A stretch of DNA of 64,000 nt from assembly GCA_004431415.1 (NCBI GenBank), contig QPMI01000402.1, forward strand, positions 1-64,000. The letters are read 5' to 3'. Source of the stretch: Cyanophora paradoxa CCMP329. Taxonomy: Eukaryota > Plantae > Glaucophyta. Positions 1-33,304 of this stretch are shown here, piece after piece. The first letter of the stretch is position 1; each line of letters opens with the position of its first letter. Below the pieces are notes generated by a model that ran no database searches, was not told where the DNA came from, and saw nothing but the letters and a program-made list of their open reading frames with translations. Made by a program: the position numbers and the translations under genes.

Positions 1-373
1 TTACTAGTGATGAGCCTTTAACTGAGGGTTCTATTAGACACATTCTAGCAAAGCAGAAACGATATAGAGAGGACCCAGCATATAGAGAGTATAAGAAACA
101 ACAAGCCCTGGCATCCTATTATCGCAGAAAGCCCAAAAAGAGGAGCAGAGACCCAGAGGGAGACCGATTAAATATTATTTGCCTACTGATAGTAGCAATG
201 GACCCCACAGGTCTATAAGATACTTGAGAAAAAGCGGTCTCAGTATGCTACTGAGGCAGCTATTAAAAGTTTACAGACAGGAACTGGTGTTCGCAACAAA
301 AAAATGACTTAAAGGAAAAAGTAGATAGGTTGTATTGAGGAAAAATTATTTTCGTATCTACTATTAAAGAGAA

Positions 374-700
374 ATGCCGAATATCCGCAAGATACTCACA
401 GATGATGAAAAAGCAGAGAAGCTGAGACTGAAAAGGGAGCAAGATGCCCAAAGAAAACGCGAAGCCTATCATAAAAAGAAGGAGGAACGATTATCCCAAG
501 GAGCCGCTACAGTTCACACACCAGAAGAACTCAAAAAGATTGCCCTCAGACACCAGAGGAAATACAGGGAAAATGAAGAATATCGCGAGCAAAAAAAGGC
601 AAAAGCGCTGGAATATTACCACAAGAAGAAAGATGAACAGCCCAAGAAACCCAAAGAGCATAAACCGGTTGGAAGACCTCGGAAATATATCGAAGAATAA
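374..700 (+). CDS. Small basic coiled-coil protein with C-terminal AT-hook
   Basis: 108-aa K/R/E-rich ORF ending KPVGRPRKY (AT-hook-like GRP). A frameshifted paralog lies at ~60-180 (RYREDPAYREYKKQQALASYYRRK ... RPRGRPIKY). Confidence 0.6.
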   Translation: MPNIRKILTDDEKAEKLRLKREQDAQRKREAYHKKKEERLSQGAATVHTPEELKKIALRHQRKYRENEEYREQKKAKALEYYHKKKDEQPKKPKEHKPVGRPRKYIEE

Positions 701-918
701 ATTCTCGATCGAAACAAATTTTGTAGAAATCGATTTGATCGGAGGCAAAAAAAATGACAGCTTTCTTCCCTCTTTTTTAAAACTGTACCTATATATCGAG
801 ACAGTATCCCGACCCAAAACTACTTAAGGACTTGGCAAATAATAGGATATATATAAAAGACAATTCCTCCTTCCGAAATTATTTTCTTCGTTAAAGGTAG
901 AAGTCCCCAAAATCGAAA

Positions 919-3501
919 ATGAACAAAATCGAGAAATTCGCCACCCCTGTTGAAAATGCTACATTCCTTAGTACTCTCATTGGTGATCGCAACAAGGTCA
1001 CCCATGTATTTGATTCTGCTGAAGATGCCCTTGAAGCCATTGATAATAGCAAGGTTAAGACCTGGGCTGAATGCATTCAACCTGAGCAAGTCACCAGAGT
1101 TTACCTGGACCTGGATAAATTCGCTGATTTGAAGGAGAACATTGCTGAAAACTATGCTGAGGCTGAAACTGTTGTAAGAGAGATGAGAGATAAGCTATGG
1201 AAGCGATCTGGGACCACTTCGATTAACGATATTGCTGTTGCAGTTCGCCATAGAAGGGTTTATTTGATCAAGGAGGATGTCACCAAGTTCAAGATCTCAG
1301 CCCACTTTATCATTAAATCGCTTGCATGCAAACATGAAGATATCCCAAGCTTTTCAAAGCTATGGGATTGGTGAAAAATGAGGATTATGACAGTGGAGTT
1401 TACAGCTCCACACAGAACCTTATCTGCCTCAATTGCTGCAAAGGTGAGACTCTGGATGCTCAAAATAAATCAAAGAAAGATGTTGATAAAAACGTTTGCT
1501 TTAAGAAATTCGTTGACTGTGACAAAGTGTTAATGCGAAATGAGGACTTCTTTGTATCTTTCTTCTCAGCTTCTACTAAACTTGTGGATGAATCGAATAT
1601 TTCTGCATTCGCAAATTATAGCCCTGAGCCAAAACCAGTTAAAAAGGAGCCAAAAAGTGATAAAGTGAAGACTGAGAAGGTAGAAGCTGAAAAAGACACT
1701 GAACCCGAAAATCCTGTTACTTTCGAACTGCTACAAAGTGTTATAATGGGTCTGAATGGTGAGAGAGCTAATGAGTATAAAACTTGGATTGATGTAGGAC
1801 TGGTCATCATCAATGTTGGGGAAGACAACAAGTTCACCCTAAAATGCAAGCTGAACTCTTCCACCAATTCTCAGAACAGAGTGACAAGTATGATTATGAT
1901 GAATGCCAGGAGAAGTTTACACAGCTTCGCAGAAGCAAGAAGAAGGCTGAGCCTGGCAAAGTGTTGACCTTCAAATCCTTGGTTTATTGGTTGAGCAAAG
2001 ATAACAATGAGCTTTTCAAGGAACTCTTCCCCAAAAAGTATGCATTCCTACCAGAGGACACAGATGAAATCGATTACAAGACTGCAAGTATCCCTCCTTT
2101 GGCTGAACATTACAATGTGCATAAGAGGTATTTCAATGCTCGAATGCATCATGTTGAAAATGTTGGTTGTGTGATGCTCTGGGATGAACAACTACTTTGC
2201 TGGATGCCCAAAGATATTGGGAAGCTCTCTACAAAGCATTTCCCCCACTTGATGCATAAGGTGATTGTGAATGAGGGACAGATAATGAGAAAGAGAAATG
2301 GGAGCAATCATTTAGGAAATGGATTGTGGATCCAACAGCCACAAGATCAACTTACATGGATTTCCTCCCCTCCTGCTACTCTCAGTGCAAAATGCAAGTC
2401 TGTATTTAATCTCTATCCAGGAATGAAGGTCGACCATCAGCAATTCGAAAATGCTCCAGAGGATGTAACTGCTGAGATGATTAAGCCTTTCCTTGATCAC
2501 TTGTTCTTAATGTCTGGTGAGGATCAAAATACCTATGAATATCTGTTGAAATGGTTTGCCCACATGCTGCAAAAGCCTGGGGAACTCAATGGAGTATCCT
2601 TAATCTTCATTGGTGAGCAGGGAACTGGTAAAAATGTGTTGGTTGATACTTTCCAAAAGAAGATACTTGGAGATGCCCTAAGTTATGCAACTGGAAAGCC
2701 AAAAGAGGATCTGTTTGGTCGATTTGCCCACAATAGAGAGGATAAGATCTTGATTGTTGTGAATGAAGCCTCAGGCAAGGACACATTCGAAAATAATGAT
2801 ATGCTCAAAGATCTCATAACTTCTGATAAGATTGTAATTGAACACAAAGGGATAGATTCATACACAAAAAGCACTTTGCCAGGATTATATTCACGCAGCA
2901 ATAACAAATTCCAGTGAAATTGAAGCTGGAGATAGGCGATTGTGGTTGTTGAAGTTAGTAAGAATTCGCAAAGGATAGGTCATACTTCCTTCCACTTGTA
3001 AAATGGCTTAATGATCACTGCAATATTCGAAACATTGCCCTATTTGAGGAACAAAGTTGAATGTGAGGATGTGAACTGGATTTGCTGATAGACCCCTTAC
3101 AAATAATACTATTTAGCCCAACAGGTGTGCGCTCCAATCATTCTTATGTTCACTAAGGTGGCTTGTGGATGAGGCTTAATTTCCGAGAATAAATGCAAGT
3201 CTGGTGCCTTGTGGAAACCTGGAAGTGGTTCCAGGAGTTTATTACCAGCAATAAATAATAAAAACGATTATAATAGTCGCCGATATTATACTGAAATGAG
3301 AAGTGTTACATATATCCAAGTGAAAACTACAAATGGCAAACAATACTATCATTTCCTATTCCCACAAGTATTTAGGAATTCAGAAAGATGAAGCTTGTAG
3401 ATGATGAGACTATTGAGGAAGAAGCTAATCCAAGGATGAAACAAGAACTACCTGCTGCTGATCCTGATGCATCAGATTATGACTCTGATGTTGAAGTTTA
3501 G
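919..3501 (+). pseudogene. AEP primase-PriCT2-SF3 (D5-like) helicase, frameshifted
   Basis: ORFs 919-1374, 1362-1967 and 1844-2917 plus downstream fragments. AEP motifs RVYLDLD, KISAH and DSGVY; PriCT-2-like YKTWIDVG...FSEQSDKYD; Walker A GEQGTGKN; Walker B LIVVNEA; KDLIT..IEHKGID; SNN...GDRR. Confidence 0.85.
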
Positions 3502-4528
3502 GTTTACTCAAAAGTGGACTCACAGTTGACTCAATTTATATAAAAGACCAAACAGTCTTTTATTTATGGTTTATTTATCGATTAGGTTGACTAAGTGGGG
3601 GGAGTTGACTCATTTTTTCACAGATTCTAAAAGAGGACTCTGCCTAAAAAGAAATAAAAAGTGCCTCAACTCACCCACTAAGTCAACCAAAAATGATTTA
3701 AGAGATAGAAAAATATATTTATATGTAACTAGTAAGAAATGGCTGGAACAGATCATGATTCTGGATCGATCTATATGATTGAGAGTCAGGAAATGAACAA
3801 AGTCTACATAGGAAGAACTCACAGCCACTTCAAAAAAGATGGAGACACACAAATCAGGTCAAATGCCATCTACAGCAGACCTATGCAAGGCTTCTGATGT
3901 GAAGTTCTCAGTCCTGTATTCAAGTAAGAAGGGTGGGCATGAAGACCTAATGAACAGAGAAGCATATTACATGTATCTCTTTGAACCTTGGATAGTCAAT
4001 TTACAAAACCGAAATCCCGATTTAGGATTATAGTTTTTGCGATTCCATTCAGAGGAAGCCAGTGGATCCATTAAAACATTTTAAATTGCGTTTAGAACAT
4101 CCTAAAATAAAATCCCCTTAGAATAGGAACAAGTTAGGAATAATGCCCGAATTACCAACAAACTCATAAGGAGAAGAAATGGGAACTCATGGGATGCTGG
4201 GAACACTTTATGCAGCCCATGAAATTACAGAGGCTGAATATGACCGGGAAATAGATTAATTGCAAAGGGCAGACCCACTTTAAGCAGATTAACCAGAAAA
4301 GCAAATAACCTATATGGATAAAATTGAAACCTTGATGAATGGATAGGCTTAGGCAAATAGAACCAGATGCAGAAGATGGAACAGCCATGAATGAATTATA
4401 TCGCTGGCTCACTTACAGAGCCAGAAGGGAAGTTGTTGTAGATGTGATTGAATTCCTGGACAGAATTGCTACATCCCTTCTAATCGATTAAAGCAGGGTT
4501 AGATCAATTCAGGGCAATCAAGGTTCGC

Positions 4529-5200
4529 TTGTCTTTTATCTGCAAGTTCGTAAAAGTGAGCAATCCACAGGTTTGGATATCGAAATACATTTACAGTGAT
4601 TATTTTGTATTAACCAGGTCGAGAAATATTCGAACTGAGCTGAATAAAGCAGCCCAAATGTGTCAAGAGCAGATGAATGTGGTTGATAGCTATCGCTTGG
4701 AAAGAATCGAAATACTCAGAGTGGCTATTATGAGTTATGCTCCAACTGGTGGATGCTTTCTACAAACCCAGAGTGGATTGCTAGGAAGAAGAGCCACAGT
4801 GAATATTCGAAATATAGATGATCCTGCTTCGAAAATGCAATTTTGGCATATATTCACAGAAAAGCGATAAACTCCCATAAGAGGAATGAGCTTTCACAAT
4901 ATCGCAAATGGAAATACTCAGCAATCGCTTATAATCCGCGGCTCTGAATTTCGATAACATCCCATTCCCTGTTGCCTGTGATGCTGAGATTATTGATAAA
5001 TTCGAGGCTCAAAATGCAGGCATTAGCATTAATATATTTGGAATCGATGGAGAGGTTATTTATCCCTGCATCAATCCAGTAACCCAGGCAGAAGCATAAG
5101 GTTAATCTCATGCTGATATTTGATGATGAAGGGAATGGTCATTATATTACAATCATGTCCCTTTCAAGATTATTGAAAGTAAATCATGAAACATACTCCA
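4529..5200 (+). pseudogene. Fragment of Polinton-type DNA polymerase-associated N-terminal region
   Basis: Read across frames: RATVNIRNIDD..FENAILAYIH, NFDNIPFPV, IDKFEAQNAGISINIFG, VNLMLIFDDEGNGHYITIMSLSRLL. These resemble the conserved block that precedes the pPolB domain in Mavericks. Truncated at ~5200. Confidence 0.65.
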
Positions 5201-5514
5201 TACCAGTCCAGGGGCAATTAAATGGGATATCCCGGGCCGCTCGCACGGAACTAGATGCAGCAAATGCACGCACAGGCCCGTACCACACCCACCTGATTTT
5301 AGTTCCTAGCCAGGACCTCTTCTAACGTTCGGCCCGGCCCCCGCCCCCGGCCCCCGCCCCCGGCCCCTCCATTCCCGGCGGCGCCGGACCGCCCCGCGCG
5401 CGCCGCATAACCTCAACGCGCGCCCGAGCTCACGCGCGTCGGCCGCCGGCCGCCGCCCGCTCCCATCACGATTCGATCCCGGCCCCCGGCCCCCCCCCAT
5501 CACGGCGGCTCGCC

Positions 5515-7679
5515 CTACGTTATCGCTAGTCTTCCGAGCTCGAGAGTCGCTATCTGAGGACGTAGAGAGTCGCTGCTCGACCCGGAATCGGCGTCTACTT
5601 TCAGTTTTTCCAGCGTGAAGACGATGCAGTACTGCGCGAGGGGGCGCGGAATCGGGCGGGGCCGGCGCCGGCGGAGGGGACGCCGCGAACTCGCATCCGT
5701 GCCCTCGCTCGCCACACCTCGTGCTCCAGCATGTGCCCTGGCGGCCGCGGCGTCGACGGGGCGCCGTCGTCGGCAGGCATGGAGGGGGGGGGGGATAGGA
5801 TAGAGGGCGCGCACTCGAATAAAGACGACGTCGCGTGCCTTAGGTCGAGCGAGATGCCGAGGGCCGGAAAGCGGAGCCGGTGCAGGGGCGGTCCGCTTGC
5901 CCTCGGGGTGAAAGTAGACGAGGGCGGCGTAGGCTTCCTGCGCGTCGCTGCGGTCCGGTGGCCCTTTGATATCCTAGAGGGCCGTCGGCATCAACGAGGG
6001 CGGGAAAGGGAGCGAGGGGTAAACGGCAGCTCACGTTTCCGGCGGTTCATCCAGTGCATCGTCCAGGTTCCTGCGCGCCCGCGACCCGCGCGTCGGGCAC
6101 GAGCGGGCCCGGGGCCGGCGCACACGCGCTCGCGGACCGTAGCTGTACGGGTGCCGTTCGAGGACCTTCAGGGCGATCTCCGCCATGTCGCAACCGGCCT
6201 TGACGTCGATGGCGCAGAGGGCCGGGAACAGGTACTCGAGCACGCCGACGAGGTGGCCGTTGAGGAGGTGCAGCCGCCGGTTCGCGTTCGTGTCCGCGCC
6301 GTACTGCGGGTTCAGGAGATCTGGGAAAGGGCGGGTCGGCTCGCCCCGCGTCCCGCGCGCGTTCGGGCGGGGGGGTGGGGGCGGGGGCCGCGGACCGGGA
6401 TCGGGACGGTCGCGCCCTGGCCCCGCTGGACGCCGGTGACGATCCTCGGGCCGCGCTCGTGCTCCTTCTTCTTCTTCTTCTTGCCCCGGCGCGGCCGCGC
6501 GGTCGCGGCGGCCCGAGGCCTCCTCTTCGGCCGCTTGGCGAGAATCTCCCGCATCACGTCGAGCCGCCCCGTCCGCAGCGCCGCCTCGGCCGCCTCGCGC
6601 GCCTCGTCCAGCAGCTTCTGGTCCTGCGCGGCGGGCCCCGTCAGAGCCCGGGGCGCGCGCGGGGGGCGGGGCGGGGCGGGCCGGGCCGCACCCGGGCTTC
6701 GTTGTACATGATGCTGCGGCGGATGGAAACGTAAAGGCCGTGGAGGCGCAGGCGACGGCGGCGGCGACCGCTCGATCCCGGCGCCCTCGCGGAAGAGGCC
6801 GGGAGGTGGACGGCGGCGAGGGCGCCGCCAGGGAGATGCACGTCTGCGCCCGCGGTCCAAGACGTAGTCGTGCCGCGCCTCGTCCTCCTTGGAGCAGCCC
6901 GGCGGGAGCGGCGCGACGTAGGCGGCAACTTGCCCTGCGGGCGCGTGAGGCGCGGGCGGGCGCGGGGGAGGGGGCGCCGTACCTCGGCCCGCTGCTGCCG
7001 GATGAAGCGCGAGTCGACGCCGCCCCCGAGGAGATTGCAGGGCAGCGCGACGCGCCGCTCGGGAGATACGGCCCACGACGCCAGCGCCGAGGCGTGCGGC
7101 GGGCCGTGCGGACGCCCGAGAAAGGCCCCCTCGATCGCGCGCAGGGCGAGCAGGTCGACGGGCGGTGGGCTCAGCCCCAGCTCCGAGCCAAAGTGCTCCT
7201 CCATCCGTTCCGGCGGCCCCGTCATGCCTCGGGACGACGCCGAAAGGGAGCTGCGGGGGCGGCCGTCGGGGCGCGCGCGGGAGCCCCCCGCGACCCGGGG
7301 ACGCACGTACAGGACCTGGTCCGCCACCGACGGGGCCGAAGGATCGATAGCCGTATCGTCTCGTCGCGACCAGCTCGGCGCGTTTGTAGGGGCCTGCGGG
7401 GGATCCCCGTTGGGAGGGCGGAGGGGAAAGTGCGGGAGCAGACTCTTCGAGTACACGGGCCCGCCGGGCGCGGGCGTCTTTGACGCGGCGGCGCCGCGAG
7501 CGCCAGGCCGGACGCCTGGAGCTCCTCTTCCGGTTCATCCAGACGAGGCCGCCGCCGCCGCCGCCGCGCTCCGCCGGGGCCGACCCTCCCCCCGCACCCG
7601 CGGCGAGCGAGATGTTCATCATGCGTCCGCGCTGCGCGGCGCGCGCCTTTCTCGACGCGCGGGACGCCGCCGACGCCAT
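5515..7679 (-). CDS. Intron-rich hypothetical protein, divergent from the recombinase gene (exon limits approximate)
   Basis: Protein-like segments in alternating frames (DQKLLDEAREAAEAALRTGRLDVMREIL; LEYLFPALCAIDVKAGCDMAEIALKVLE; YCIVFTLEKLKVD), separated by short GC-rich GT..CAG stretches. Confidence 0.45.
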
Positions 7680-8257
7680 CCAGATGGGAACGGGCGCCTC
7701 GGGCGCGGCCGCGGGCCCGCTGACATCGCCGAGGTCGCTGCGATCACCTTCTCGATCGCGCGCTCTCTTCAGCGAGCTCCCGCCATGCCCGCCGAGGCGA
7801 CGCCTGCAACGGGCGGCCGCCGCGGCGACCGTTAGCCGCAGACGACGTCCGAAAGGGTCGAAATGCTTACCGGAGACTTTGGACACGCCCGGCGGTGTCG
7901 GAATCGATCGGAAAGTGCAAGTTCCCGAAGCGGGCGCGACCACGCCCGCCGATAGAGGTACCCGAGAACCGAGCTTGTGTGCGGATTGCTGGCCAAGCAA
8001 ACTACCGCAGCTGCGTGTAAGCTATCGTCTCGACACGGTTTACGGGAATCCGAGTGGCCGGATCGGCGTTTACGGGGACCAAACGTACCCCCCCCCGTTT
8101 ACGCCGTCCCATTTTTTTTTTTACAGTCGCTCGTTCCCCCCGCCCACGCGCACCCGCCCCTAACCCGCAAGCTCCCCGCGTCCTCTTTCAACGCATAAAT
8201 CGGAGCGCGCAGGCCCTTGCTATCGAGGCGCGCGCAGGCCGCGGGCGCAGCGGCGCC

Positions 8258-11200
8258 ATGTCGCTCGCGTTTGCGCGCGACTCGTGGGAGGTGGTCTCGT
8301 TCGACGCCTACGCCGGGCCCGAGCGCCTCCACGTGTTCCGCACCGACGCCGGGCCCGCGGCCGCCCTGCCCCAGGTTCAGCGCATATTCGGCAACGGACC
8401 CGCCGAGGCGGCGGAAGAGGCGGCGAGGCAGCTCACCGGACCGCACGGCCTCGCGTCGAGGCCGATCGCCGGCCCGCAGACGGAGAGCCTCATCCTCCTC
8501 TGGGAGATGCTCGCGATCGTGCCGCGGGGCCAGCTGCACCCGACCGAGAGCCCGCCGCGCGTCCTCTCCCTCCAGCACGTCGAGGAGCTGGCGTCGATCT
8601 GCTGGGAGGGGTCGGACAGCCCGCGGCTGCGGCACTGCTACCGGGACCTCACCTCGGCGATCGAGCGGCGGACGCAGGAGACGTTCGAGCGGTGCGACGT
8701 CAAGGTGCTCCACGTAGACGGGGCGAGGTTCTTCGCTCTGAAGGTCCGCCGGCTCGAAGTTCCGGAGGTCTCGCCCTGGTACATCCCGCTCGCCAGCATC
8801 GCCCAGTGCATCTACGGCGGCCCAAAGGACACGGCCAGCGTGCGGCGTGAGATCGCGAGGAGCCACCCGAGCCTCGGAGAGAACAGCCCGCACCGCTGGC
8901 TCGCGACGACGAAGACGCTCGGGCGCCCCCACTTTGCCACCCTGGCGAGAACGCTGGTCAGCTTCCTCGCGCTCTCCGGCGAGGCGGGGCAGGAGAACCT
9001 GGGGTCGGCTCGCAAGTGGTCCTTCCTGAGCCTCGAGGGGGCGGAGCAGCTCCTGGCCAAGCTTCCGGGCCGGGATCCCGCGTTCGGCCTCGCGTTCAAG
9101 AGGGCCTCGCTCGCCATCCGAGGCCACGATCCTGCGGAGATCGATTTGATGGTGCCCGAGCCCCGCCCGGCGCGGCGCCTGGCGATCTTCTCCAAGAGGG
9201 AGTGGCTAACGGTACCCCCCCCCCCCCCCCCCCCCCCCCCTCCGGCGCCGCACTCACCCCGGGCGCGCGTAGGATACGATGCTCGCAAACGTGATGACCC
9301 TCCTGCTGCACCGCATGAAGCCCAACGCGAGCGCCAAGGCCCTGTACCCCGCCAGCCTCGACACCATCGTCTCGATCCTGCGGCGATACGCCAAGATGAG
9401 CGACGAGAGGCGCCGAAAGCGGGCGCTATGGCACGCGGCAAACGGCGGGCTCGTTCTGTGCTTTGGCTGCACCGGCGGGGGGCAGGGCGGCGCGCAGAGG
9501 ACGTGGACGACGCGCGGCCACTGGGTCACGCTCGCCCTCGACGGCGCGAGCCGGTATACGCGCCCGCCCCATCCCCCCGCCCCCTCCCACGACCGCGCGC
9601 ACCGCGTCCCCGCAGGCGGTGCAGGTACTTTGACTCGCTCGGCGCGCCGCCGGATCCGAGGTTGAGGCGGGCGGCGAGCAAGGCCTTGCCGTCGTTTACG
9701 TGGGTCACGGAGCTTCCCGATCGCCTGCAAACGGACGGTCACTCCTGCGGTAAGGCCGGCGCCCTCGCCCGCGCGCGCGCACGCGCCGCGAACCGCGCGC
9801 ACCAGGGATATGGGCGCTGTGGTTCGCCGAGAGCCTCGCGCTGGAGGCGGCGACGCAGTACTCGTGGGAAGAGTACCTGAACGACGGCTCCATCGGATTC
9901 CTAAAGTCTGGTGAGGCGTTTACGAGCGAGCTCGGCGCTAAAAACACGCGCTTCATCGCACGGAGGTGCCTCTATTCGGCCCTCCCCGCCCCCGCCCCGC
10001 CCCCACCACGCCGAACCCCGCCCCCCGCAGGCGAGAGGCGTACCGGTCCTTGCTGGAGAGCGCCATCGTCGACACCAGCGATCTCCGCCTGTTCGAGATC
10101 GACGAGGACGTCGACAGCTGGGCCGTCGCGCTCCCCGCATCGAGCCGCGCGCCGCCGGGGGCGGGCGCCATCGAGGCCGCGGGCCCGGCGGCGCCGGGGG
10201 ACCCCTCGTCCTCGTCCGCGAGCTCGTCGTCGTCCGAGAGCGAGGCCGAGGGCGACGAGGGCGGCAGCGACGGCGACGCGCGCCCGCTCACGCCATCGAC
10301 CGCGCCGCCTCGCCCGCCGTCGGCTCGCCGCCGGCGCCCGTCGCGCTCGCCGTCGCCCGGACCGGCTCGCCCCCGGCCGGCGAGGCGCGGCAGCCGTACG
10401 CCCTGCACGAGGGCGCGTTTAGTCGGGCCCTGAAACTGCAGCTCGCGGCCTATCGGGAGTGGAGACAGGCACCGTTGAACGCCTCGCGCAAGGGCAACGC
10501 CGTCGAAAACTCGAGCCTGGCGAACGACCTGGGCATCATTCAGCGGCTGCTGGGCTACGTCCGCATGCGCGAGGGGCTGGAGGGCGAGCTCACCCTCGAT
10601 CTGATGAGCCGGGTCGACGCGGTCGAAATCGTGCTTCGTTTCTTCAAGTGAGGCGGGGCGGCGGGCGCGGTGGAGGGGGGGGGTGCGGGGGGCGTTTACC
10701 AAACGCCGCGGCAGGTTCCTGCGCGAGGAGCGGGGCACGCTGCCCGGGACGCTCGTGAGCTACGCCTCCACCCTCATCAACCTCGCCGCCTTTGTCGCGG
10801 GACGGGGCGGCGCGCCGGCGGGGAGCGAGGGCCCGCACGGTCAGGCCCTGCGCAACCTGCGGGTGAGCTTCCCTCCCGCCCCGCGCCGCCGCCCCCCGGG
10901 GGCGCGCCGACGCGCCGCGCGCACCCTCAGAACCAGCTCGTCGCCGAGTCCAAGGCGGAACGGAAGTGGAGAACGAGAAAAACGTGGGTCCGCTTCGAGG
11001 ACGTCGTTCGCGGGCGCGTCGAGGCCTACGCCGCGTTTCGCTCCGAGGAGCGGCCGCGGCAAAAGGCGAAGTACCTGAGGGAATCTCTCTTGCTTGGGTT
11101 CCTTTCGATCAGCCCGGCGCGGCCGGGCCTCCTCCAGCACCTGAAGATCGGCGAGACGCTGCGCAAGGACAACGGTCGGTGGAACATGTCGATCCTGAGC

Positions 11201-12866
11201 ATGCGGATCCAGGACGGCTCCGAGGAGGGCGCGCTCACCCACAAGACGGCGGTGCGGGGGGCCTCCCGCCGCGCCGCGCCGGGACGCGCGCCGCCGACGC
11301 CCCCATCCGCAGAAGCGGCACGGCGCCGTGATCGTCCCGGTCGCCCAGCAGCTCCAGGTGCGCGCCCCGCCCCGCCCCGCGCGCGCTCCGTCGACCGCTG
11401 CCGCGCGGCGCGTCAGGAGCCGCTAACAGAGTACGTGGAGAGCTTCCGGCGTCACCTGTTGAGCGAGGGCGCCAAGGACCAGGGGTACATCTTCTTCACC
11501 TCCGGCGGCGATGCGTTTCGCCGCGGGTCCTGGACCCTGTTCGCGAAACAGGTGAGGCGAGGCGCGCCGCCGGCGCGGGGCGGGGCTCACCCGGCGCAGG
11601 CCATGAGCCGCTGGACGGGCGTCGCCGTGCCGCCGCGGACGATGCGCGCCGTCGTGACGACCTGGGTGCGCGATCAGGCGGCCCAGGGGCGGATCGAGGG
11701 CGACGTCTGCACCAGCATCATCGAGGGGACGGCGCGCCTCCTCCAGCACACCCCGCGGACGGCGACGATGCACTACGATTGCAATAAGACGCAGCGCGAG
11801 GTGCGCCGCCCCCGCCCCGCACCCCCGGCCCCGCGCGCTCACCGGGCAAGAGGCGTGCGTGGCGCTGGCCTGGCTCGAGCGCGCCGCCGGCGAACTCGAG
11901 AAGCCGACGGTTGCCGCGCTCGAGGGGCCGGAGGGGCGGTCTTCGTCGGACGGGGACGGGGAGGAGGGGGAAGGCGAGCCCGGCGCCGCCGCCGGCGCCG
12001 CCGCCGCCGCCGCCTCGGACGACGGGGAGGAGGGCGGGAGCTCGGAGAGCGAGGACGGCGGGAGCTCGGAGGAGCTGAAGGAGGGCCTGCGCGTCGAGCG
12101 CGAGCTCGCCCGCGCCGAGGGGCGCTGGTGTCCCGAGTGCCGACGCATCTTCGGGACCCCCAGAGGCATCTCCCGCCATCGTTGCTCGCCGCGCACGCCC
12201 AAGGCGCGCGGTCGGAGCGACGACGACGACGAGGAGGATGAGGAGGAAGAGGAGGAGGAGGATCCGACGCCCAAGGCCCCGCGCCGCGAGCGCGGCCGCG
12301 GCGGGCGGGACGTGGCGGTCCGGGACCCGCCGGCGGAAGACGAGGGCGAGGGGTTGGACGAGGCTCCGAAGCGGGGTCGCCCCCGCGCGGCCGCCGGCCG
12401 CCGGCGCCCGCGCGAGCGGGAGGAGATGGCGCCTCCGCCGGCCCCCTGGCACATACGCCTGATCACGCCGAGCCCCATGCCTGCGCGGAGCGTCGTGGCG
12501 GCGATGGTGACTCGGCGGGGCGACCTCTTACCCACGACGGTCTTTGCGAGGCTCACGGCGACGGTGGGGCTCGCCTCGGGCCAGCAGGAGAACCGCCTCG
12601 TCGTTCTGCGCAGGTTCGGCACGCTCTGGACGCCCTCGAACGAGGGCGGGCCGGACGATTACACCTACCCGCGCGCGGCGGTGCCCGTCGAGTACCGCGC
12701 GACGAACGGGGCGATCGACGTGACGACGTCTGCCGAGGAGGTCATGCAGCGGCTCGGCGCGGCCGCCCGCGAGGCCCCGCCGGCGGCGCACCCGCCGGGA
12801 GGGCGCGGGAGCGCCACCGGCCGCCGCCGCGGCCGCCCGCCCAAGAACCTGAGGCGAGGGGCGTGA
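8258..12866 (+). CDS. Spliced multidomain protein: Ulp1/C48-type cysteine protease + tyrosine recombinase + acidic tail with zinc finger and AT-hooks
   Basis: About 10 GT-AG introns restore frame (e.g. 9212-9272, 9554-9615, 9750-9805, 9966-10030). Protease: GHWVTLALD..RYFDSLG..LQTDGHSCGIWALWFA. Recombinase: SPARPG (R), THKTA (K), PRTMR (HxxR box with H replaced), LQHTPRT (H), MHYD (Y). One frameshift is needed near the C-run at ~10370. Confidence 0.8.
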
Positions 12867-18345: not shown

Positions 18346-20011
18346 ATGCAGCGACCCACCCAGACGGCCGCCATTCTAGCCGCCGAGGCCGCGGTGCGCG
18401 CCCGGATCATCCGCGAGAGCGACCCGACGAACAAGCTCGGCGAGCTTTCGGCCCGCCTGTTACTGGAGGCATCACAGCTGCCGATCCAGTACCGTAGCTG
18501 CGCCGCGCGGGGATGCTGGGCGTCCACGGGGTGCCGGACGCCGCTGTGCACGGACCACCTCGAACGAGCCTCGGTGCGGGCCGCGCGGCGAGCGGCCGGC
18601 ACCTCCCGCGCGGCTGATTGTTGCGTAGCTACGAGTCGGGCCCTCCAGGGCGGTCCCGGGCGCCCTGGGCCTGTTCGCGGTTGCTTCGCCGGCCGCGCGG
18701 GCGCGGGCCGCCCTCCTCGGCCCGGCGTACCGCGCCCTCGTCTTTCACCCAAAGCTCCGGAAGCGCATCTGCCCGTACGACGGGTGCGCCGCGCCGCCCT
18801 TGGACCCTCGCTTTCGCCGGACGACGTCGACGCGCGCGCGCAGGCGGAAGATCGTCTGCCCGACGCACCAGTGGGCCCAGCTCCAGAAGACCGGGCGGTG
18901 GACGTGCGCTTTCCCTCGCCGCCGGCGCCGGCGCCGCGCGCGCCGCTCACGGGCGGGGGCGGGCCCGTTTACGCAGGTTCGTGTTCCAGATCAACTCGAG
19001 CTGCCTCATCGACGCCTCCCTCCCGATCTTTACGGGCCGCTGGGCGAACAACGGCTATCCGTTTGCGCGGAACAACGCCACGATCGCCGGAGACGGCAAC
19101 ACGCAGACGGCCTGGCTGCACGCCACAAAGTGCATCTACGACGACGACGAGGTGCGCCCCGCGCGCCCAACCCCCCCCCCCCGCGGCGCGCCGCCGCCGC
19201 CGACGAACGCGCCCGCCCGCGCGCAGATCCTCGTCTCATACGGTACGTGCCGCGCCCGCCCGTCTCCCCCGGCGCGACCCCGCGGCCGACCCCGCCCGTC
19301 GTGCAGGCGACGGCTTCTTCGATAAGCTGCTGGGCCAGCTCAAGGCGGGCGTCTTCGCCGAGTGCGACTGGCCCGGGCAGGTGCGCCTGTCGGAGCGGGA
19401 CGAGCGGATGTCGAAGCGCCCCCGGGGCGAGCTGGACGGCCTGGCGGTGCTCGGGTGCGCCGCGGGCGCCTGGACCCCAGGACCGCTGGTGGGAGCGCGC
19501 GGAGGCGGCGGCGGCCGCCCTCAAGTTCGTGGCGCGGGTGGTCGGCATCCTGGAGGACGAGGACGACGGCTGCGGCGGCGGCTCGGCCGAGCCGGCGATC
19601 CTCTGGCCGCGCTGCCCGTTTGCGGCGCGCTTCGGATCGTGCGGCGCGCCGGCGGCGGCGCCCGCCCCGCCCCGCGCACCCCGAGCCCCGCGGCGGGGAG
19701 CGGCGCGACCCCGTCCGGGTGCCGTCGACGACGCCGGCGCCGGCGCGGCCCGCGGCGGCCTTCTGGCCGCCCTGCCCCTTTGCAGCGCTCTGCGGGGCGG
19801 GCGGCGCGCGCGCGGGGCGGGGGCGCCCGCTCCCGCCCGCCCCGTCGGGGCGGGTCCGGAGGAGGCTTCTCCGGCGCCGGCGCCGGCGGCGCGATCCCCG
19901 GCGGCCCTCTGGCCGTCCTGCCCTTTGCCGCGCGCCTCGGGCGGCCGCGGGCGGGGCGTTTACGCGTGCGAGGACGCCGCTCTGCCAGGGGCAAAGCGGG
20001 CGCGCTCGTAA
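18346..20011 (+). CDS. Spliced SET-domain methyltransferase with Cys/His pre-SET segment
   Basis: After removing introns (18574-18628, 18784-18843 and at least three more): CAARGC..PLCTDHL, LRVGPSRAVPGALGLFA, ICPYDG, FVFQINSSCLIDAS, GRWANN, LHATKCIYDDDEILVSYGDGFF. This is canonical SET motif order. The 3' end is uncertain. Confidence 0.8.
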
Positions 20012-20835
20012 AGGGCGCCGCGGGCGGGCCCGGCCGCGGCCCGGCGGCGGGGCGGGCCGGGGCAACCGACTCGCCAAGTCGGCGAGCCCGAGGGTCCCGA
20101 GGAGGTTGGGGGTTAAACGTTGGGCTCGCTGTGCATGGCGCGGGTTTTGGGGCTTGGTGTGAGCACTGTGCCACGGTGAGCCAGTGTGAGGTCGCCGGCT
20201 TTAATTTCGATTGCATTGAAAAATATATTTAGTTAATCTGATATCGATGGTACCGCCAGCGCTAGCTATAGCCGCCGGGCAGCAGTACTAGTAGCTCATG
20301 ATCATGACTCAGTGATCAGCAGTCGATGATCATGATCATGAGCTTAGCTGCAGCTATCATAGTATAGCCTATTGGGCGGCGTATCATATAATTATAAATG
20401 AGGATCGGAGCTGGAGTCAATTTAGGACCTACTGATCATCATGGCATGAATCCCGGGCCCGGATGATCCGCATGATCACTGAGTCAGTACGTATACAGCT
20501 AGATATCGATCTAGATCTCCTGCAGCTGTACATGTATACGTATACGTATACGTATCGCGTACGCGTACGTAGTTTGGTGCTTAACGTACCCCGGCTGGGA
20601 CCGCATTAATATCGAAACGCTAAGAAACTGCGGTATGTATCCCTTAGAGCAGCCAAAAGGCTTCAAACCGCATTAATTCGGTACCGCATTAATATCCATG
20701 TAGGGGTCCGGGTCCAAAAACGCATTGATTACTGGCGCATTAATTAAGTACTAGCGTTATACGGTAGTTGACGTCGACGCCACCGGGCCAACTCGTGATC
20801 GACCGTCTCCGAGGCTCGACCGTCACGGCCGCCGG

Positions 20836-21360
20836 TAGGGTTGCCGCGCTTAAGTTCAAGTGCACTTAAACTTAAGCGTTTAAGTTAAGTTTAAGTTTTA
20901 GTTTAAGCGGCCTGCTTAAACTTAAGCTTAAACGGGGACACCCCGGTTCGAATCCCGGGGGCAGAACCCCGGAAACCCCCTCAAAACGATGTCAGATGTG
21001 CAGAAAACATGCTGTATGTCATCGCCATCGGCTATAAAACTTCTCTGCATTCATAATGGTCCCAACACTGCCAGTTTCGAGGCTGGGTCTCCCTCAGAAA
21101 GGATTACGTATACCCCCCTTCAGAAGCTTCACTGACTGAAACTTCTGGAAAATCGTGTGTTTAGTGATTAAAATCCGTCAGGAAGGCATTCTAGCATGTC
21201 TGTGGCGCGTTTGAGATTGAATCGGTGTCTGTTTCCTCATCATACTGGGTGCTCTTGTATGGACTTAAGTTTAAGCGCTTAAACGCTTAAGTTTAAGCGC
21301 ACTTTTAGTTTAAGTGGGGGAGGCTTAAACTTAAGCTTAAACCGTTAAACGGCAACCCTA
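20836..21360. mobile_element. hAT-type MITE (525 bp)
   Basis: 11-bp TIR TAGGGTTGCCG (20836) / CGGCAACCCTA (21350-21360). Perfect 8-bp TSD GCCGCCGG at 20828-20835 and 21361-21368. Subterminal CTTAAAC/GTTTAAG repeats at both ends. Confidence 0.9.
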
Positions 21361-22016
21361 GCCGCCGGGCGTCGGACGCACTGCGGCACTCGGCGAGTCG
21401 ACGGCGACCCGTGACCGTCGGACGCCCGGCGGCCGAGTATACTATGATAGTACGTATACGTACGGTCGCGATCGGCCCGGACTCGACTGAGTCTACTAGC
21501 TCGGCCGAAGCTAAGCTTAATTAATATTATATACTAGTACTACGGTAATTCAATGATTAAGCTTAAGCTTAACTAGTAAGCCGCCGAAGTTCGAATTCGC
21601 GCGCGGTCCGCGGCCGACGCCGGCCCGACGGTCGGCCGAACCCGACCCCCTATTAATATTAACTTAGTAATATTTTTTAATATTCGATCTGAATCGATGA
21701 TGCCATATGGCATGATGATACTAACTTAGTTACCTTAGTAACTTGTTTTTAGTAACTCACTACTAAGTTACTAGCAGTAACTTCTAGTAAGATACTCCCG
21801 AGTGACCGGGGCCGAGTCCCGACTCCCGAGTCTCGGACTCCGGGATCCGGATCCGGGACTCCGGGACTCCGCCGGGCCGGGATCCGAAATCCGGATGTCG
21901 ATATCGATCCGGAGTCCTGACCGGTACGGCGGTACCGCGGCCGGGACTCCGGGAGTCCCGACCGTCGACGTCGGACGCCGGGACGTCGACGTCTACGTAC
22001 GGTATACGTTTACGTA

Positions 22017-22279
22017 CTGTAAACGTAGAAAAGTTCGTTGAGACTTAATTTCGACAAAACCCGAAAATCGTAACGAAAATACGGTTCGACAGCAGCATAT
22101 TTTCGTCAGCCCCCCGACTCCGCCATAGACGGGTCAGCCGCTAGTACCCTACTCGATACAAAATTTCCGTTCAAGAGTATCAAATATTCGTCAAAGTGCA
22201 GGTCTGACGAATATAGACGAACTTCGGAAATAAAGACGCTGTCGAAGATTCCTACTAGGCTACCGTAGTACGTTTACAG
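22017..22279. mobile_element. Tc1/mariner/pogo-type MITE
   Basis: TA|CTGTAAACGTA ... TACGTTTACAG|TA: an 11-bp TIR flanked by TA. The interior is non-coding with TTCG(T/A)-type subrepeats. Confidence 0.6.
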
Positions 22280-23526
22280 TATACGTAGCTCGATGATGAG
22301 CCTCGATCGTGCACGGCCGTTACTAACAAAACAAATAGTAATTATAAGATCCGATGATCCGATGATCATCGGATCAACTTATTATAAATATACGTAAATG
22401 CCATGATGTACTAGATATATATATACGTATACGTACTAGCTTCAGCTATAGGATAATTAATATAATAGCCTAGCGTACTTATATATATAAATTATAATAT
22501 AATTAGTCGTCTGTTACGGTAGTACGTATACTGTGTATATATATATAATATATTGTTATATAATATAGACTCGCCGAGTCGTGACGGTGACTCGTGACTC
22601 GTGAGTCGTGATCCGGCACTCACTGAGAGTCACTGTCTCAGTGTCACTCACTGAGTCACTTCCAGACTCTGAAGACTCTGAGAGTCGACGTCACTGACTG
22701 ACTGGACGTGGACCCGGGACTCGGGACGTCGACGTTGACGTGCGCTGTGCAGTACTAGTACGTACGCGGTGCAGATCTAGATCTAGAGTCACTGCAGCTG
22801 CCAGTGCAGATCTACCGTAGTACCGGTTGCCTACTGGTAGTAGACTCTGACTCTGAGAGTCCCGACTCTCGGCCGCGGAGTCCGAGATTCAATGATTCGA
22901 ATTCCAAGTTCGGGACGAGAACTTGGAAGCGCTACGTATACGTACCGTAGTAACTTAGTAACCGTACTACGGTAGTACCGTAGTACTAGGCTAGCTAGCT
23001 CAGTATACGTACTACGGTAGCTCAGCGGCTCATCAGAGTCATCACTGACTCACTGGCATTGAGTCAGCGGCTTTCATCTGCCGCACTCACTGAGTCAGTG
23101 ACTGCGGCAGTGCGCCGCGGCGCGGCATATATATCGCGCGGGATTCGCGGCATTGCGGCACGCGGCAGGCCGGCCGGCCGCACGTCTCGCTTGGCCTAGG
23201 CCTAGCTATAGTTCTGCACTCAGCTGGCACTGCGGCAGGGCGTGCGTCGACGTCGTCGCCGTCTGCATAAATCCGGCGACTTGTATGTTTATGAACCTGC
23301 GTGAACGATTTCAATATCAGCGTTAACGATATCGCTAATATCGCGACTCGCAGGCCGAACCCACCAGTACACGTATACGTATTCCACGGACCGTTTGACT
23401 TCCGATCGTAATTGTGCCGCGGTGACAACAGAAGACGCATCGGAATGTCGAATGCACATGTACACGCGCCCGACGCGGTACGTCGCTTTCCGGCCTTGCA
23501 CGCTCGCCGTCTACATCTGCCCTTAC

Positions 23527-26066
23527 ATGGCTGATATCGGTGCCGCATCGCGTTTGCAGCTGCCGTCCGCGGTTCACGACATCGCAAGCATCGTAGAGGC
23601 GATCACGACCGCAGCAACGGCTCGGTACGACAAGGAGGCCTTCTGGAGCGAAATCTGCGGGGACCCGTCCGAGATTGTGGCGCTATGTTCATCAGCGGGA
23701 AAGGATCTCGAGGGCGGTATCAAGGACGCAGGGGCCCGCGCGTGCGATCGACTTCGAACCCTGCTCGGCCGCGACGGACCGCCGCCTCCACCGGACACGG
23801 TGGAGAGGGCCCTCGTCCTTGCGATTCGGTACGAGATGACACAGGTCGTCGATATGCTGCTCCGGAGCCTTCCGAGTGCGCGCGTGGATGTGCTCGAACG
23901 CGGCCTCGCTCTAAAGTTGGCCGTCTTAAAGGTGAGAACGCTGTTAACCGTTTACCGACTCTTCAACTTTGTGCCGTACCCGCACCTTGCTGATTTACGC
24001 ACGGTACCGCGTAGGCCGGCGCGGGAAACGATCATGAGCGCAACAGAAATGTGTGGGTCCTCGTGTCGCATCTATCAGAGGTGATCTCCGACGAGAACAT
24101 CGAGTCCGTGATCGCAAATGTCAACGAGATGCTCTTCTTTGCCATCGCACTCGGGCAGCGCGACACTGTGCATCGCATTTTACATGATCTATTCTCGCGC
24201 ACGGGCCGCAAGCTCTCGACGTACTGGACGTTTCCCAAGGTCCACGTCCAACTCCCCGGCGTCGACGGCCTCGAGCCCGCGGATTTTACATTTCCCTCCG
24301 TGATCGATGTGGTCATGGTATTAAACAGGGACGATACGAACGACATGGTCAGGGCCTTGCTCGAGCTCATGCCGTCTCCACCCCTTTCCGATCTCTGGCA
24401 ACCGAGCGCTTCGGCGCTTCGCACAACTGTCGCCGCACTTCGCGCCGTCGAAGTGTTGCCGGCCCCCAGTGAACTACTGGAGCCCGAGGATTACGCCATC
24501 TCGGTGGCCTTTGTCCGGGCCGTGGAGAGCGCCTTCCACAACGTTTGCAACCCCGCGATGTTCGAAGCCCTCGTAAAAAGGTGCCTCCGCGGTTGGACGA
24601 AATATGAGATCTCCCTCTCTTCGTCGTCGTCTTCCGATTCCGACGCACCGCACCCTGATTTGGTGCGTTTACCGTGCAATCGCTCTGATAATATCTACCA
24701 AAAACGCCTTGCAGCCGCTGATTTGTACCCGCGCAGGAAGAATACGAGCTGCTTCCCAGATGCATTTCATCGTCCACGTTTATATCCTTCTTGGAACGTC
24801 TGGGTCTCGCTGCGTTTACCGGCGGCGACGCCATTCGGCACCGCAAGGAGCAGGTCTTGCGTGCGGACAGCCCCGAGGCGGCGGTCGTGCTCGAAAAGTT
24901 CAACGTGGACCGCATCCATTACGAGCGGATCGTCAACGAAGTGGCGGACGACCTCGAATCGAGAGCCCGCGAGCGCTCCATGAACATCCTCCGGGCAGCA
25001 CTGCGCTCGCCGTGCACCGTCCATCATCCCGATCGTCCACCGGTGCCCGCCCTCGATTTCATCCTCGCCTGGGCACAGTCCCGGGCGCTTTACGACGAGT
25101 CGGACACCGCGTTCAAGAATGTGGAGCTCGATGCGTACGTCAAAGTGCTCTTCAGACCCGACGTCACCGTCTCCGAGTTTACGCGCGGCATCGCGGCGTG
25201 GTCGCGGGCGGTTCAGAACCGCACGCTGCGGATCGACGGCGCCGTCGTGCTTCGGTCGCTCTTCGGACCCGTGACCATCACCGGTCCCTCGCCAGCGACG
25301 TTGGCCAGCAAGCGCTCGCACGTCCTGCGCATGATCCAGGATCGTAAGATCAAGCTCCGGGCCGCCGCCGAGTTGGAGGGGATCCCGATGGACGCCCTCC
25401 ACGTTGCCGCGCGCGCGTTGGACGCAAACGTACGCACCCTCGCCGTCGTTTACGGCGCCCCGCGGTATCCCTGCTCAACGCAGCGCAGGAAATAAACACC
25501 ATGCTGGACATCCTGAGCTCCTGCAACTCCCTCGGATCGTTCATCATCAAAGGCATTTTCACCCACGCGATCGAGGGTGTCGACGCAAATGTCAAGGTTC
25601 GCTGCGGGCCCCTGGTTTACGTTTTGTTCGGCCCGCCCCGAGTGCGCGCGCGATCCTGACGGGCACGCACGCGCGCAATTTGCAGGTGACCTCGCGCGAG
25701 ATGTGCGAGCGGGCGCGCGACTTTTTCGTGTTCCTTCGGGAGGTCGACTCGCGGGTCGCCGCCGGGGGCCGGATCTCGGGGAGCGAGGACTGCAAGAGGG
25801 CGCTGGCGACGCTGAAAACGGTCGATGAACTGAAATGCATGGCCGGCTCGAAAGAGTGGAAGCTCCTCGGCGGTCCGGAGATATGCCTCGATGGGTGGAA
25901 GGCGCTCTACGGTTCGTCGTTGATCGATCCGCATCCGGATCGTGCCTCTCTCGGGGGCAACGGCGTTGTGACGGGCGCGTTTTTCAGATGCGGCAGAGGC
26001 GTGCGTGGGTTCGGGCGGCCCGTCGCCCTCTGTGCGGCCCGTCGAGGCGGCCCCTGCCCCCGGTAA
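23527..26066 (+). CDS. Spliced hypothetical helical protein (possibly degenerate ankyrin-like)
   Basis: Phase-0 introns 23932-24014 and 24663-24736 join ORFs 23395/24051/24791 exactly in frame. Two more GT-AG introns start near 25430 and 25597. Confidence 0.6.
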
Positions 26067-26905
26067 ATACGATGCGGGAATGGCGTCTTGATCCCGTAAT
26101 ACCGGTGTTGACCTGCACGCGCAGGGCCGCCGGTGCACGCTCCGTCGCCCTCTTCGGCCGACCGCGGCGCGCCGCCGTCGTCGGCAACCGTTTCCGCGGG
26201 TCCGTTTGCGTTGCGGAATGATGCTCGGAGGGTTGATTTACGCCCGAATGCAGGGGCCGATACCACCAAAGCCGGCGCGGCAAACGTTGGTCGCCCGCGG
26301 GAGCCCGAGGCGACGTCGCAGGCCGCCGGTGCGCGTAAATGAATGAACCGCGCGCGAGGCGCGCGTGGAGGCGCCCACCGACCGATCCTGCAGTCGCGGT
26401 CGCGGTGCCGGCCGCGGCGCCGGCCGCTCCATCGCCCCAGGCACCGAGTCCCGCGCCCGCTGTGCGACCCGCCGAGGCGGCCTCTGCCCCTGGTAAATAC
26501 GATGCGGGAATGGCGTCTTGATCCCGTTTATATACGTAATACCGGCGTTGACCTGCACGCGCAGGGCCGCCGCCGCAGGCGTCGCCCGCTCCGTCACCCT
26601 CTCCGGCCGACCGCGGCGCGCCGCCGTCGTCGGCGACCGTTTCCGCGGGTCCGTTTGCGTTGCAGACGAATACTCGGAGGGTTGATTTCCGCCCGAATGC
26701 AGGGGCCGATACCACCAAAGCCGGCGCGGCAAACGTTGGTCGCCCGCAGGAGCCCGAGGCGACGTCGCAGGCCGCCGGTGCGCGTAAATGAATAAAACGC
26801 GCTCAAGGCGCGCGTGGAGGCGCCCACCGACGGATCCTGCAGTTGCGGTCGCGGTGCCGGCCGCGGCGCCGGCCGCTCCATCGCCCCAGGCACCGAGTCC
26901 CGCGC
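26030..26905. repeat. Tandem duplication, two copies of ~430-447 bp
   Basis: GGTAAATACGATGCGGGAATGGCGTCTTGATCCCGT at ~26062 and ~26492, with high identity continuing to GCACCGAGTCCCGCGCC at ~26441 and ~26890. Confidence 0.9.
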
Positions 26906-32279: not shown

Positions 32280-32935
32280 AGCGCCGCTGCCGCCGCGGAT
32301 ACGGGGCGGGCAGGACCCCTCGGGGTGGCTGGTGAGAGCGGCCCGCCGGCGCCGCCGCGGATACGGGGCGGGCGGGACCCCTCGGGGTGGCTGGTGAGAG
32401 CGGCCCGCCGGCGCCGCCGCGGATACGGGGCGGGCGGGACCCCTCGGGGTGGCTGGTGAGAGCGGCCCGCCGGCGCCGCCGCGGATACGGGGCGGGCGGG
32501 ACCCCTCGGGGTGGCTGGTGAGAGCGGCCCGCCGGCGCCGCCGCGGATACGGGGCGGGCGGGACCCCTCGGGGTGGCTGGTGAGAGCGGCCCGCCGGCGC
32601 CGCCGCGGATACGGGGCGGGCGGGACCCCTCGGGGTGGCTGGTGAGAGCGGCCCGCCGGCGCCGCCGCGGATACGGGGCGGGCGGACCCTCGGGGTGGCT
32701 GGTGAGAGCGGCCCGCCGGCGCCGCCGCGGATACGGGGCGGGCGGGACCCCTCGGGTGGCTGGTGAGAGCGGCCCGCCGGCGCCGCCGCGGATACGGGGC
32801 GGGCGGGACCCCTCGGGGTGGCTGGTGAGAGCGGCCCGCCGGCGCCGCCGCGGATACGGGGCGGGCGGGACCCCTCGGGGTGGCTGGTGAGAGCGGCCCG
32901 CCGGCGCCGCCGCGGATACGGGGCGGGCGGGACCT
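32280..32935. repeat. Tandem array of ~10.5 x 62-bp GC-rich units
   Basis: GGTGAGAGCG recurs at 32331, 32393, 32455, 32517, 32579, 32641, 32701, 32762, 32824 and 32886. Confidence 0.97.
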
Positions 32936-33304
32936 CATAGGGTTCTGGGCTTTGTTCGGTGCCACTAGAAGATGGCGAACTGATACTAGCTATCCTAGAT
33001 GGTGAACTGATACTAGCTATCCTAGATGGCGAACTAGAAGAAGATGGCGAAGATCCTAGTTCTTCGTGTACATGCCCGACTACAGGTAATCTGATATGTT
33101 CCTTGTTCTCCTAAGTGTATCATGGTATCCTAGAGATGTAAATATATACAATTCTAAAGATCTTATCAGTAACGCGAGTCGCCGACATGAAGACGTACGA
33201 AACTTTGAATACTTAGAATTTTATCATACCAACTGGAAATAGTACACGTTTCTCCAATCAGATAGAAATTACATAGATCGGAGCCAGACAACCAACCGCG
33301 CACA

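Follow-up and report, generated by a model that had tools for sequence, protein, structure and literature searches.

A predicted clan CE protease-tyrosine recombinase fusion in a virus-like region of the Cyanophora paradoxa genome

Does an intron-rich locus of Cyanophora paradoxa, a glaucophyte and freshwater alga, encode a Ulp1-like protease and a tyrosine recombinase (YR) in one protein, and what kind of genetic element would make use of such an enzyme? The locus lies on the plus strand at positions 8258-12866 of a 64,000-nucleotide stretch of contig QPMI01000402.1, the whole of which is referred to here as the window. A first-pass annotation, made from the sequence alone, had proposed the fusion but made it depend on one frameshift. 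Our analysis resolves a gene of 11 exons and indicates that the fusion is very probably real, with one predicted protein of approximately 1300 aa. We further posit, with modest confidence, that this protein serves as resident recombinase in a family of large virus-like elements of the nuclear genome, which also code for a Pol-delta-like polymerase, and that the tethered isopeptidase acts against silencing or degradation. Searches and alignments were performed with single exons, natural open reading frames (ORFs), or the paralogue proteins of C. paradoxa.

Exon chain and domain architecture

The coding sequence is interrupted by ten introns on the plus strand (9212-9272, 9554-9615, 9750-9805, 9966-10030, 10648-10714, 10863-10930, 11252-11312, 11358-11416, 11552-11599 and 11801-11852), each of which is bounded by GT and AG, measures 48-68 nt and has a GC content of 81-89%. 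A branch-like motif (CTCAC or TTTAC) is found 14-20 nt 5' of the acceptor in four of the ten, and intron 10 requires a GAG acceptor to keep the frame, the same acceptor that is implied by the paralogous gene model P0001. The PacBio assembly of C. paradoxa has been reported to have 67.6% GC and 9.2 introns per gene (PMC6704402). When aligned one by one to the paralogue P0014 (1346 aa), the exons displayed 40-60% identity (mostly 40-55%) with z scores of 11-74 against shuffled sequences. They tile P0014 in order with a few residues at most per junction (P0014 residues 305|307, 401|403, 446|449, 498|501, 694|697, 746|748, 851|852, 866|868 and 911|913), so that all ten introns hold and the chain of about ten introns proposed earlier is confirmed. 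Pfam searches with individual window exons gave no meaningful match and a phmmer search of PDB with the YR ORF of the window was blank; the domain assignments below therefore rest on paralogues and profiles.

Exon 1 (8258-9211, 318 codons, 42% identity to P0014, z=74) encodes an N-terminal domain of approximately 300 aa that is conserved across the fusion family; the exon closes with the W-L-x(-D) motif, with which the protease begins. This domain had no match in Pfam, PHROG or PDB. A Bro-N or KilA-N identity was considered and found no support in the searches, and an internal duplication within the domain was likewise unsupported.

The protease is encoded by exons 2 (9273-9553), 3 (9616-9749) and 4 (9806-9965), as judged from its residues, the alignment with P0014 and profile matches. 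Its W-L-T|D motif is split by intron 1, and the catalytic triad follows in the order His, Asp, Cys: the His codon lies at 9519 in exon 2 (GHW), and exon 3 carries the Asp at 9632 (YFDSLG), the oxyanion Gln at 9728 and the Cys at 9746. The spacing is 17 between His and Asp and 6 between Gln and Cys. Exon 4 contributes the helix that follows the Cys and the end of the domain (P0014 residues 449-498). In PDB, the protease profile matched SnCE1 (9qte, E=3.6e-9), XopD (0.002), ChlaDUB1 (0.004), SENP1/Ulp1 (0.2) and also NopD, and none of its 32 matches was an adenain or I7 protease. The best Pfam score for Peptidase_C48 was 18.5 bits, below the gathering cut-off of 20.7; clan CE membership is secure, and the C48 label is borderline. 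The intact C48-type set of catalytic residues listed in the first-pass annotation is thus present in a clan CE domain.

SnCE1 is an efficient deSUMOylase and a weak deubiquitinase that is itself N-terminally processed (PMC13125535). Since this closest solved structure is a deSUMOylase, deSUMOylation would be the lead activity, and the earlier suggestion of a deSUMOylase agrees with the best-supported prediction; ubiquitin or NEDD8 may be substrates as well. On these grounds the protease is probably an isopeptidase for SUMO or ubiquitin rather than a processing enzyme. A processing enzyme could either cut in cis to free the recombinase or descend from the vUlp1 maturation protease of a Polinton-like ancestor, which would fit the Ulp1-family protease encoded by Polintons (PMC11071308), the long disordered linker between protease and YR, and the N-terminal processing of SnCE1. 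We regard this as improbable, as the profile matches are ubiquitin-like isopeptidases rather than enzymes of the adenain or I7 type, and the sequence of the linker is not conserved. Moreover, the W-L-x-D motif and the Q-x-D-G-x-x-C spacing match those of C48 and SnCE1, unlike adenain, in which the spacing of the Q/C motif differs.

Exon 5 (10031-10647) comprises a linker rich in acidic residues, Ser and Pro, a break of the reading frame, and the start of the YR core-binding domain, as delimited by GC content at third codon positions (GC3) and paralogue alignment. The core-binding domain continues in exon 6 (10715-10862), which is Phage_int_SAM_1-like according to its alignment with P0014. Exon 7 (10931-11251) carries the catalytic Arg (11120) and Lys (11243) as identified by motif and P0014 alignment, exon 8 (11313-11357) adds 15 codons of the YR (9/15 identical to P0014 852-866), exon 9 (11417-11551) was placed by alignment to P0014, and exon 10 (11600-11800) holds the R-T-M-R motif (11636-11647, second catalytic Arg at 11645), the His (11747) and the nucleophile Tyr (11774). 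The full R-K-(H)xxR-H/W-Y series of the YRs is accordingly present. Matches were obtained to a XerA profile (E=0.0055), to a PHROG integrase (1e-4) and, with Foldseek and a low-confidence model, to Cre/XerA (about 1e-3); Pfam on P0014 returned Phage_integrase (E=0.002) and Phage_int_SAM_1 (0.022), both under the cut-off. Foldseek, the sub-threshold Pfam hits and PHROG thus recover a core-binding domain together with a catalytic fold, as the first-pass annotation had read from the residues. In the AlphaFold model of P0014, pLDDT is mostly 60-80 in the core-binding helices, where alone the model is confident; a single-sequence structure model was unusable. The His of the H-x-x-R motif is R, K or Q across the whole YR clade, relatives from Polinton-like viruses (PLVs) included, and its replacement here is therefore no sign of decay.

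Exon 11 (11853-12866, including the stop codon) encodes an acidic tail, a C2HC zinc finger from 12129 (zf-C2H2_4, E=0.022), a first RGRP motif at 12372, a domain of approximately 115 aa (12420-12773) and an AT-hook with the second RGRP motif at 12828. The acidic tail, zinc finger and AT-hooks had been noted before, as had the other domains, while the 318-codon exon 1 with its conserved domain and the 115-aa domain of the C-terminus had been missed. The latter is conserved in the full-length paralogue models and gave no meaningful match.

A paralogue family and the frame break in the linker

When the ORF at 10931-11800 was searched against 1.84 billion proteins, it yielded five strong matches, all five of them EukProt models of C. 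paradoxa. Nine further gene models of this alga carry protease and YR in one chain, with mutual identities of 30-89%. They share the order N-terminal domain, clan CE protease, acidic linker and YR, to which the full-length models append the zinc finger, the conserved 115-aa domain and the AT-hook, and it is this recurrent order that bears out a single protease-recombinase protein. A family tree, built by a quick method, with long branches and used for subfamily grouping only, resolved four subfamilies: the window locus with P0001 and P0002; P0004; P0003 with P0014; and P0005 with P0011, P0012 and P0013. The YR domains of the last four are joined by branches of zero length, which indicates recent copying. 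The catalytic motifs are retained across the subfamilies, except in segments lost to gene-model errors. Fusion genes were located on contigs tig00020553, tig00000269, tig00000658, tig00000411, tig00000836, tig00021535, tig00000179 and tig00020538, and g10514 and g2900 count among the intact paralogues.

We considered whether P0001 is the window locus in an older assembly. This was rejected, because EukProt contains exact copies of the window's polymerase and of the products of four of its intronless ORFs, whereas the window does not encode P0001. P0001 is therefore a second, near-identical read or copy, located near the end of tig00020538 and 15 models from a host-like gene on that contig. If P0001 were this locus, the recombinase would lie near an element end, by analogy with phaeoviruses.

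The frameshift was previously placed near 10370, but the evidence puts it approximately 80 nt away from there. GC3 switches frame at 10272-10300, and both P0001 and P0002 read PLTP-IDRAASP across the break, which amounts to one C more than in the window; the site is thus 10293-10295 (plus strand), where the window has CC and the two models imply CCC. Left unbridged, the frame runs into a stop at 10431-10433. The fusion does not rely on this repair, because the paralogues are continuous through the linker. Compared with the window, P0001 shows many apparent deletions, and a helicase-like gene of the window is also broken twice, so that a homopolymer error is plausible. The loss of one base in the C run is more likely to be an assembly error than a true lesion, and we lean towards the view that this copy would be intact in vivo. 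An intron that bridges the frameshift was rejected, since every GT..AG intron that could restore the frame has its end at 10422 and removes conserved core-binding residues.

Protease and recombinase could in principle be two genes, with a real stop at 10431-10433 and the fusion an artefact, and the window as assembled does contain both the frameshift and the stop. We hold this to be extremely improbable. The interval 10031-10470 contains no ATG in any of the frames, and the first one in frame, at 10565, already falls within the conserved core-binding domain. The alignment to P0014 extends to either side of the break, with no more than 11 residues between the two aligned parts, and P0001 and P0002 read through it.

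A Pol-delta-like polymerase and the virus-like surroundings

The fusion gene is followed on its right by intron-bearing genes and then by an intronless block. Within this block, among virus-like genes and 21 kb from the fusion gene, lies an intronless gene (34262-37873, minus strand) for a Pol-delta-like family B DNA polymerase (PolB) of 1204 aa (Pfam E=9e-51; best PDB match Pol delta, E=2e-42). The only other PolB among the matches listed, P0016 (g10525, tig00020553), is 42% identical and is located 11 models from the fusion gene of P0014 (g10514). By a simple calculation, such proximity would arise by chance in about 0.8% of cases for fusions distributed evenly among 25,831 genes, and in about 4% for fusions restricted to the 5,406 methylated genes. 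The PolB identity of 42% is close to the exon identity between the same two copies (mostly 40-55%), which is consistent with co-divergence of PolB and fusion gene. We consider it likely that the fusion gene belongs to a large PolB element. This PolB-encoding, virus-like region had escaped the first-pass annotation, as had the kinship of the YR with those of PLVs.

The nearest YRs outside Cyanophora (24-34% identity) are from Prymnesium polylepis and from environmental contigs. On one of these contigs, L008, the YR has as neighbours a packaging ATPase of the A32 type (Pfam E=1.6e-5) and an ORF with motifs like those of protein-primed PolB (pPolB); judging by its genes, L008 is a PLV. The respective stretch (L008:1223-9564) is GC-rich and Polinton-like, and its pPolB-like ORF has 1596 aa and a SAP domain. 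On another contig, L001, the genes close to the YR include those for a VRR-NUC nuclease and a DNA methylase. By sequence comparison, the fusion YR is akin to the YRs of PLVs. A clan CE domain was absent from all non-Cyanophora YR relatives examined. Viral contigs, phages and prokaryote genomes yielded no kin of the PolB, helicase, YR or protease in word-based scans, which reach close kin only; a chlamydial origin of the protease is conceivable. In a sister YR family (L001:10874-13021, L002:2757-4694 and P0010), a downstream NGDC...HF(D/E)P motif appears OTU-like by eye and was confirmed by neither Pfam nor PDB, and some members have a Tudor-like tail; in this family, a YR and a ubiquitin-type protease may have been combined independently.

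The GC-rich block that contains the fusion gene spans at least 58 kb. From 5400 to 64000, the hexamer GTTTAC/GTAAAC, which we take to resemble a forkhead-type site, is enriched 9-15-fold in the intron-rich and intronless parts alike, coding sequence included. Three GTTTAC copies (8038-8102, plus strand; 0.2 expected) lie in the upstream region that the fusion gene has in common with a divergent gene on its left. The latter is an intron-split gene on the minus strand (5518-7880), and the common upstream region measures approximately 380 bp.

The fusion protein might instead mobilise, as its transposase, a small DNA transposon of Crypton-like type, with one or a few genes, that accumulates in silenced, virus-rich regions, with PolB as a mere neighbour. 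Cryptons are known for intron-rich YR genes and for C48 cargo, terminal repeats were not found, and a gap of 3 kb with low complexity and a miniature inverted-repeat transposable element (MITE) at 20100-23300 parts the intron-rich block from the rest. Furthermore, four copies are near-identical, two of which share a contig (tig00000269) at a distance of 10 models, and no PolB was seen with them among the matches listed. Against such a transposon, the PolB linkage recurs in two copies that are only about 40-45% identical, with matching divergence, the nearest YRs are located in PLV contigs, and the GTTTAC signature is common to both blocks. We therefore judge a small transposon to be unlikely.

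Several observations weigh against our proposal of a large element with a resident recombinase. The two fusion copies on tig00000269 are closely spaced, and no PolB was seen beside the remaining fusion paralogues among the matches listed, so that the linkage is documented at two loci only. Neither element ends nor att sites nor terminal repeats were found in the window, and no capsid gene was recognised in it, although the block exceeds the right end of the window and many ORFs remained unmatched. The GTTTAC enrichment could be a genome-wide host feature. With regard to the protein itself, the two structure models have a mean pLDDT of 39-40 and hence low overall confidence, the paralogues were predicted ab initio from an assembly prone to indels, and substrate specificity is unreadable from sequence in clan CE.

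Further genes of the intronless block include a GHKL ATPase (39472-41394, plus strand; HATPase_c_3, E=6e-6) and, at 52865-61765 on the plus strand, a primase-like ORF with motifs recognised by eye only, together with a frameshifted UL9-like helicase region (Herpes_ori_bp, E=0.25; PDB blank). Ten tandem units of 537 bp (44100-49470; 97-100% identity), with 149-nt inverted arms 93 nt apart, may represent an origin or terminal repeats, akin to the palindromic origin repeats of viruses. A partial copy of the unit is present at 43020-43262. An element with its own polymerase and such a palindromic array could employ its YR, like Xer or Cre, as a resolver of replication dimers or to circularise its genome rather than as a host integrase, and Cre and Xer are the closest solved folds. 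These matches, however, mirror the content of PDB, no other integrase was seen in the window, and in phaeoviruses and many PLVs it is a YR that has been proposed as integrase, which leaves a resolver as a highly improbable role.

Besides the fused protease, the block contains ubiquitin-system genes with F-box-like (41794-42945, E=0.095) and RING (55212-55964, E=3e-8) domains. Two near-perfect variable-number tandem repeats (62 bp x 10.6 and 129 bp x 6.4; 32282-34132) enclose a short spacer of higher AT content where the intron-bearing genes give way to the intronless PolB block, possibly a terminus or origin. An intron-split gene at 18350-19500 (plus strand) shows SET-domain-like motifs by eye, and Pfam was blank on the pieces tried. 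The low-complexity stretch at 20100-23300 is composed of short palindromes and hosts a MITE-like insert (20838-21361) with inverted ends AGGGTTGCCG and internal TTAAG repeats, and a local duplication of approximately 430 bp is found at 26035-26900. At the left end, the window from 1 to 5320 is AT-rich (39% GC), CpG-depleted and frameshifted and encodes a D5-like primase-helicase (DUF5906, E=3e-14; PriCT-2). This stretch is probably the decayed remnant of a viral element, Polinton-like or other, and is separate from the GC-rich block.

Possible function and comparison with known systems

If the fusion protein is the resident recombinase of such an element, the YR would excise a circular form and reintegrate it at short homologies via a phosphotyrosine intermediate, a mode proposed for both Cryptons and phaeoviruses. 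The protease tethered to the YR could strip SUMO (or ubiquitin or NEDD8) from chromatin and repair factors at the recombination site, or from the DNA-linked recombinase, and this removal may counter silencing or the degradation of the covalent protein-DNA complex. This suggests that the element carries its own anti-silencing tool on its integrase. Host-style introns would tie the gene to the host spliceosome, as for the latency genes of punuivirus.

Transposons as unrelated as Mutator, Ginger1, Helitron and Crypton repeatedly carry Ulp1 or OTU domains, the role of which has only been hypothesised (PMC2836005, PMC3212892). A protease and YR in a single chain make the role of such passenger proteases testable, by short-site recombination with Cys and Tyr mutants of one protein. 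In addition, the gene is a marker for large virus-like elements that form a family of multiple, in part recent, copies in a glaucophyte, and it provides a candidate for their integration enzyme and illustrates how introns and indels conceal such genes from annotation. We tentatively suggest that these elements could form a new lineage of large (>58 kb), intron-bearing, self-replicating integrative elements of glaucophytes, with a PLV-derived recombinase fused to a deSUMOylase, a proposal that we put forward as speculation. If true, the lineage would be a new group of nuclear DNA viruses or a capsid-less giant transposon that unites integration and anti-silencing in one protein, and the sister YR lineage may have been paired in a similar way with an OTU-like protease.

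The pairing had been thought unfamiliar from Cryptons, which does not hold: CryptonF-2_PS and some CryptonS of oomycetes encode a C48 peptidase beside the YR, described as an additional protein or second gene (PMC3212892). They resemble the present case in that one eukaryotic element without long terminal repeats encodes both a YR and a peptidase of the C48/Ulp1 type. They differ, apparently, in the place of the protease, which here forms an N-terminal part of the YR chain, and in the linkage of the present gene to PolB. The C-terminal GCR1_C domain of CryptonF gave no Pfam match on exon 11 or the paralogue tails. The gene is also set apart from DIRS and Ngaro elements, which combine the YR with reverse transcriptase and RNase H and have split or inverted repeats: it is intron-rich, no terminal repeats were found, and no reverse transcriptase was recognised in its flanking frames or among the other ORFs scanned in the window.

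Among viruses, YR-bearing PLVs (PMC12220804; contigs L007 and L008) provide the nearest YR kin and share the KT motif and the K/R in place of the H-x-x-R His. L008 differs in that it combines pPolB-like ORF, A32 ATPase and YR without a clan CE protease, whereas the element of the window has a Pol-delta-like PolB. PLVs measure 14-40 kb and are characterised by a protein-primed PolB or a helicase-primase, an A32 ATPase and a jelly-roll capsid; the block here spans at least 58 kb, and only its YR is PLV-related. The phaeovirus-derived endogenous viral elements (EVEs) of Ectocarpus likewise stem from a large DNA virus of algae, and their YR, the proposed integrase, mostly lies close to one end of the insert; the available part of that report notes no fused protease, and ends and reactivation have been mapped there (PMC13236599). 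Giant EVEs, such as punuivirus (10.64898/2026.10.09.758095) and those noted in general terms in C. paradoxa (PMC12344493), share the combination of intronless replication genes with host-style, intron-rich genes. With respect to the RNA-primed family B polymerase and viral replication genes of giant EVEs from Nucleocytoviricota or Mirusviricota, PolB is firm in the window, the UL9-like (E=0.25) and TFIIB-like (E=0.17) matches are weak, and no capsid or other virion marker was recognised in the part of the block that the window covers.

As for the protease, SnCE1, XopD and ChlaDUB share the His-Asp-Cys triad, the oxyanion Gln and the Q-x-DG-x-x-CG motif, but they are secreted bacterial effectors, whereas the domain described here is predicted to be part of a nuclear mobile-element protein of an alga (PMC13125535). 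Ginger1 and Mutator (Ulp1 or OTU) are similar in that a mobility enzyme is fused to a SUMO/ubiquitin isopeptidase in intron-bearing genes; they differ by DDE chemistry, a C-terminal protease and terminal inverted repeats, compared to a YR and an N-terminal protease here (PMC2836005). In the open-access literature searched, we found no report of a single-chain protease-YR, of this family, or of a Crypton or mirusvirus from Cyanophora. A YR and a C48 peptidase on one element (Cryptons), transposase-Ulp1 fusions (Ginger1) and YR integrases (phaeoviruses, PLVs) are thus already known, and what appears to be new, judged from the predicted protein, is the union of protease and YR in a single chain. 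By analogy, this protein may act like the integrase of a Crypton or phaeovirus that carries a Ginger-style passenger.

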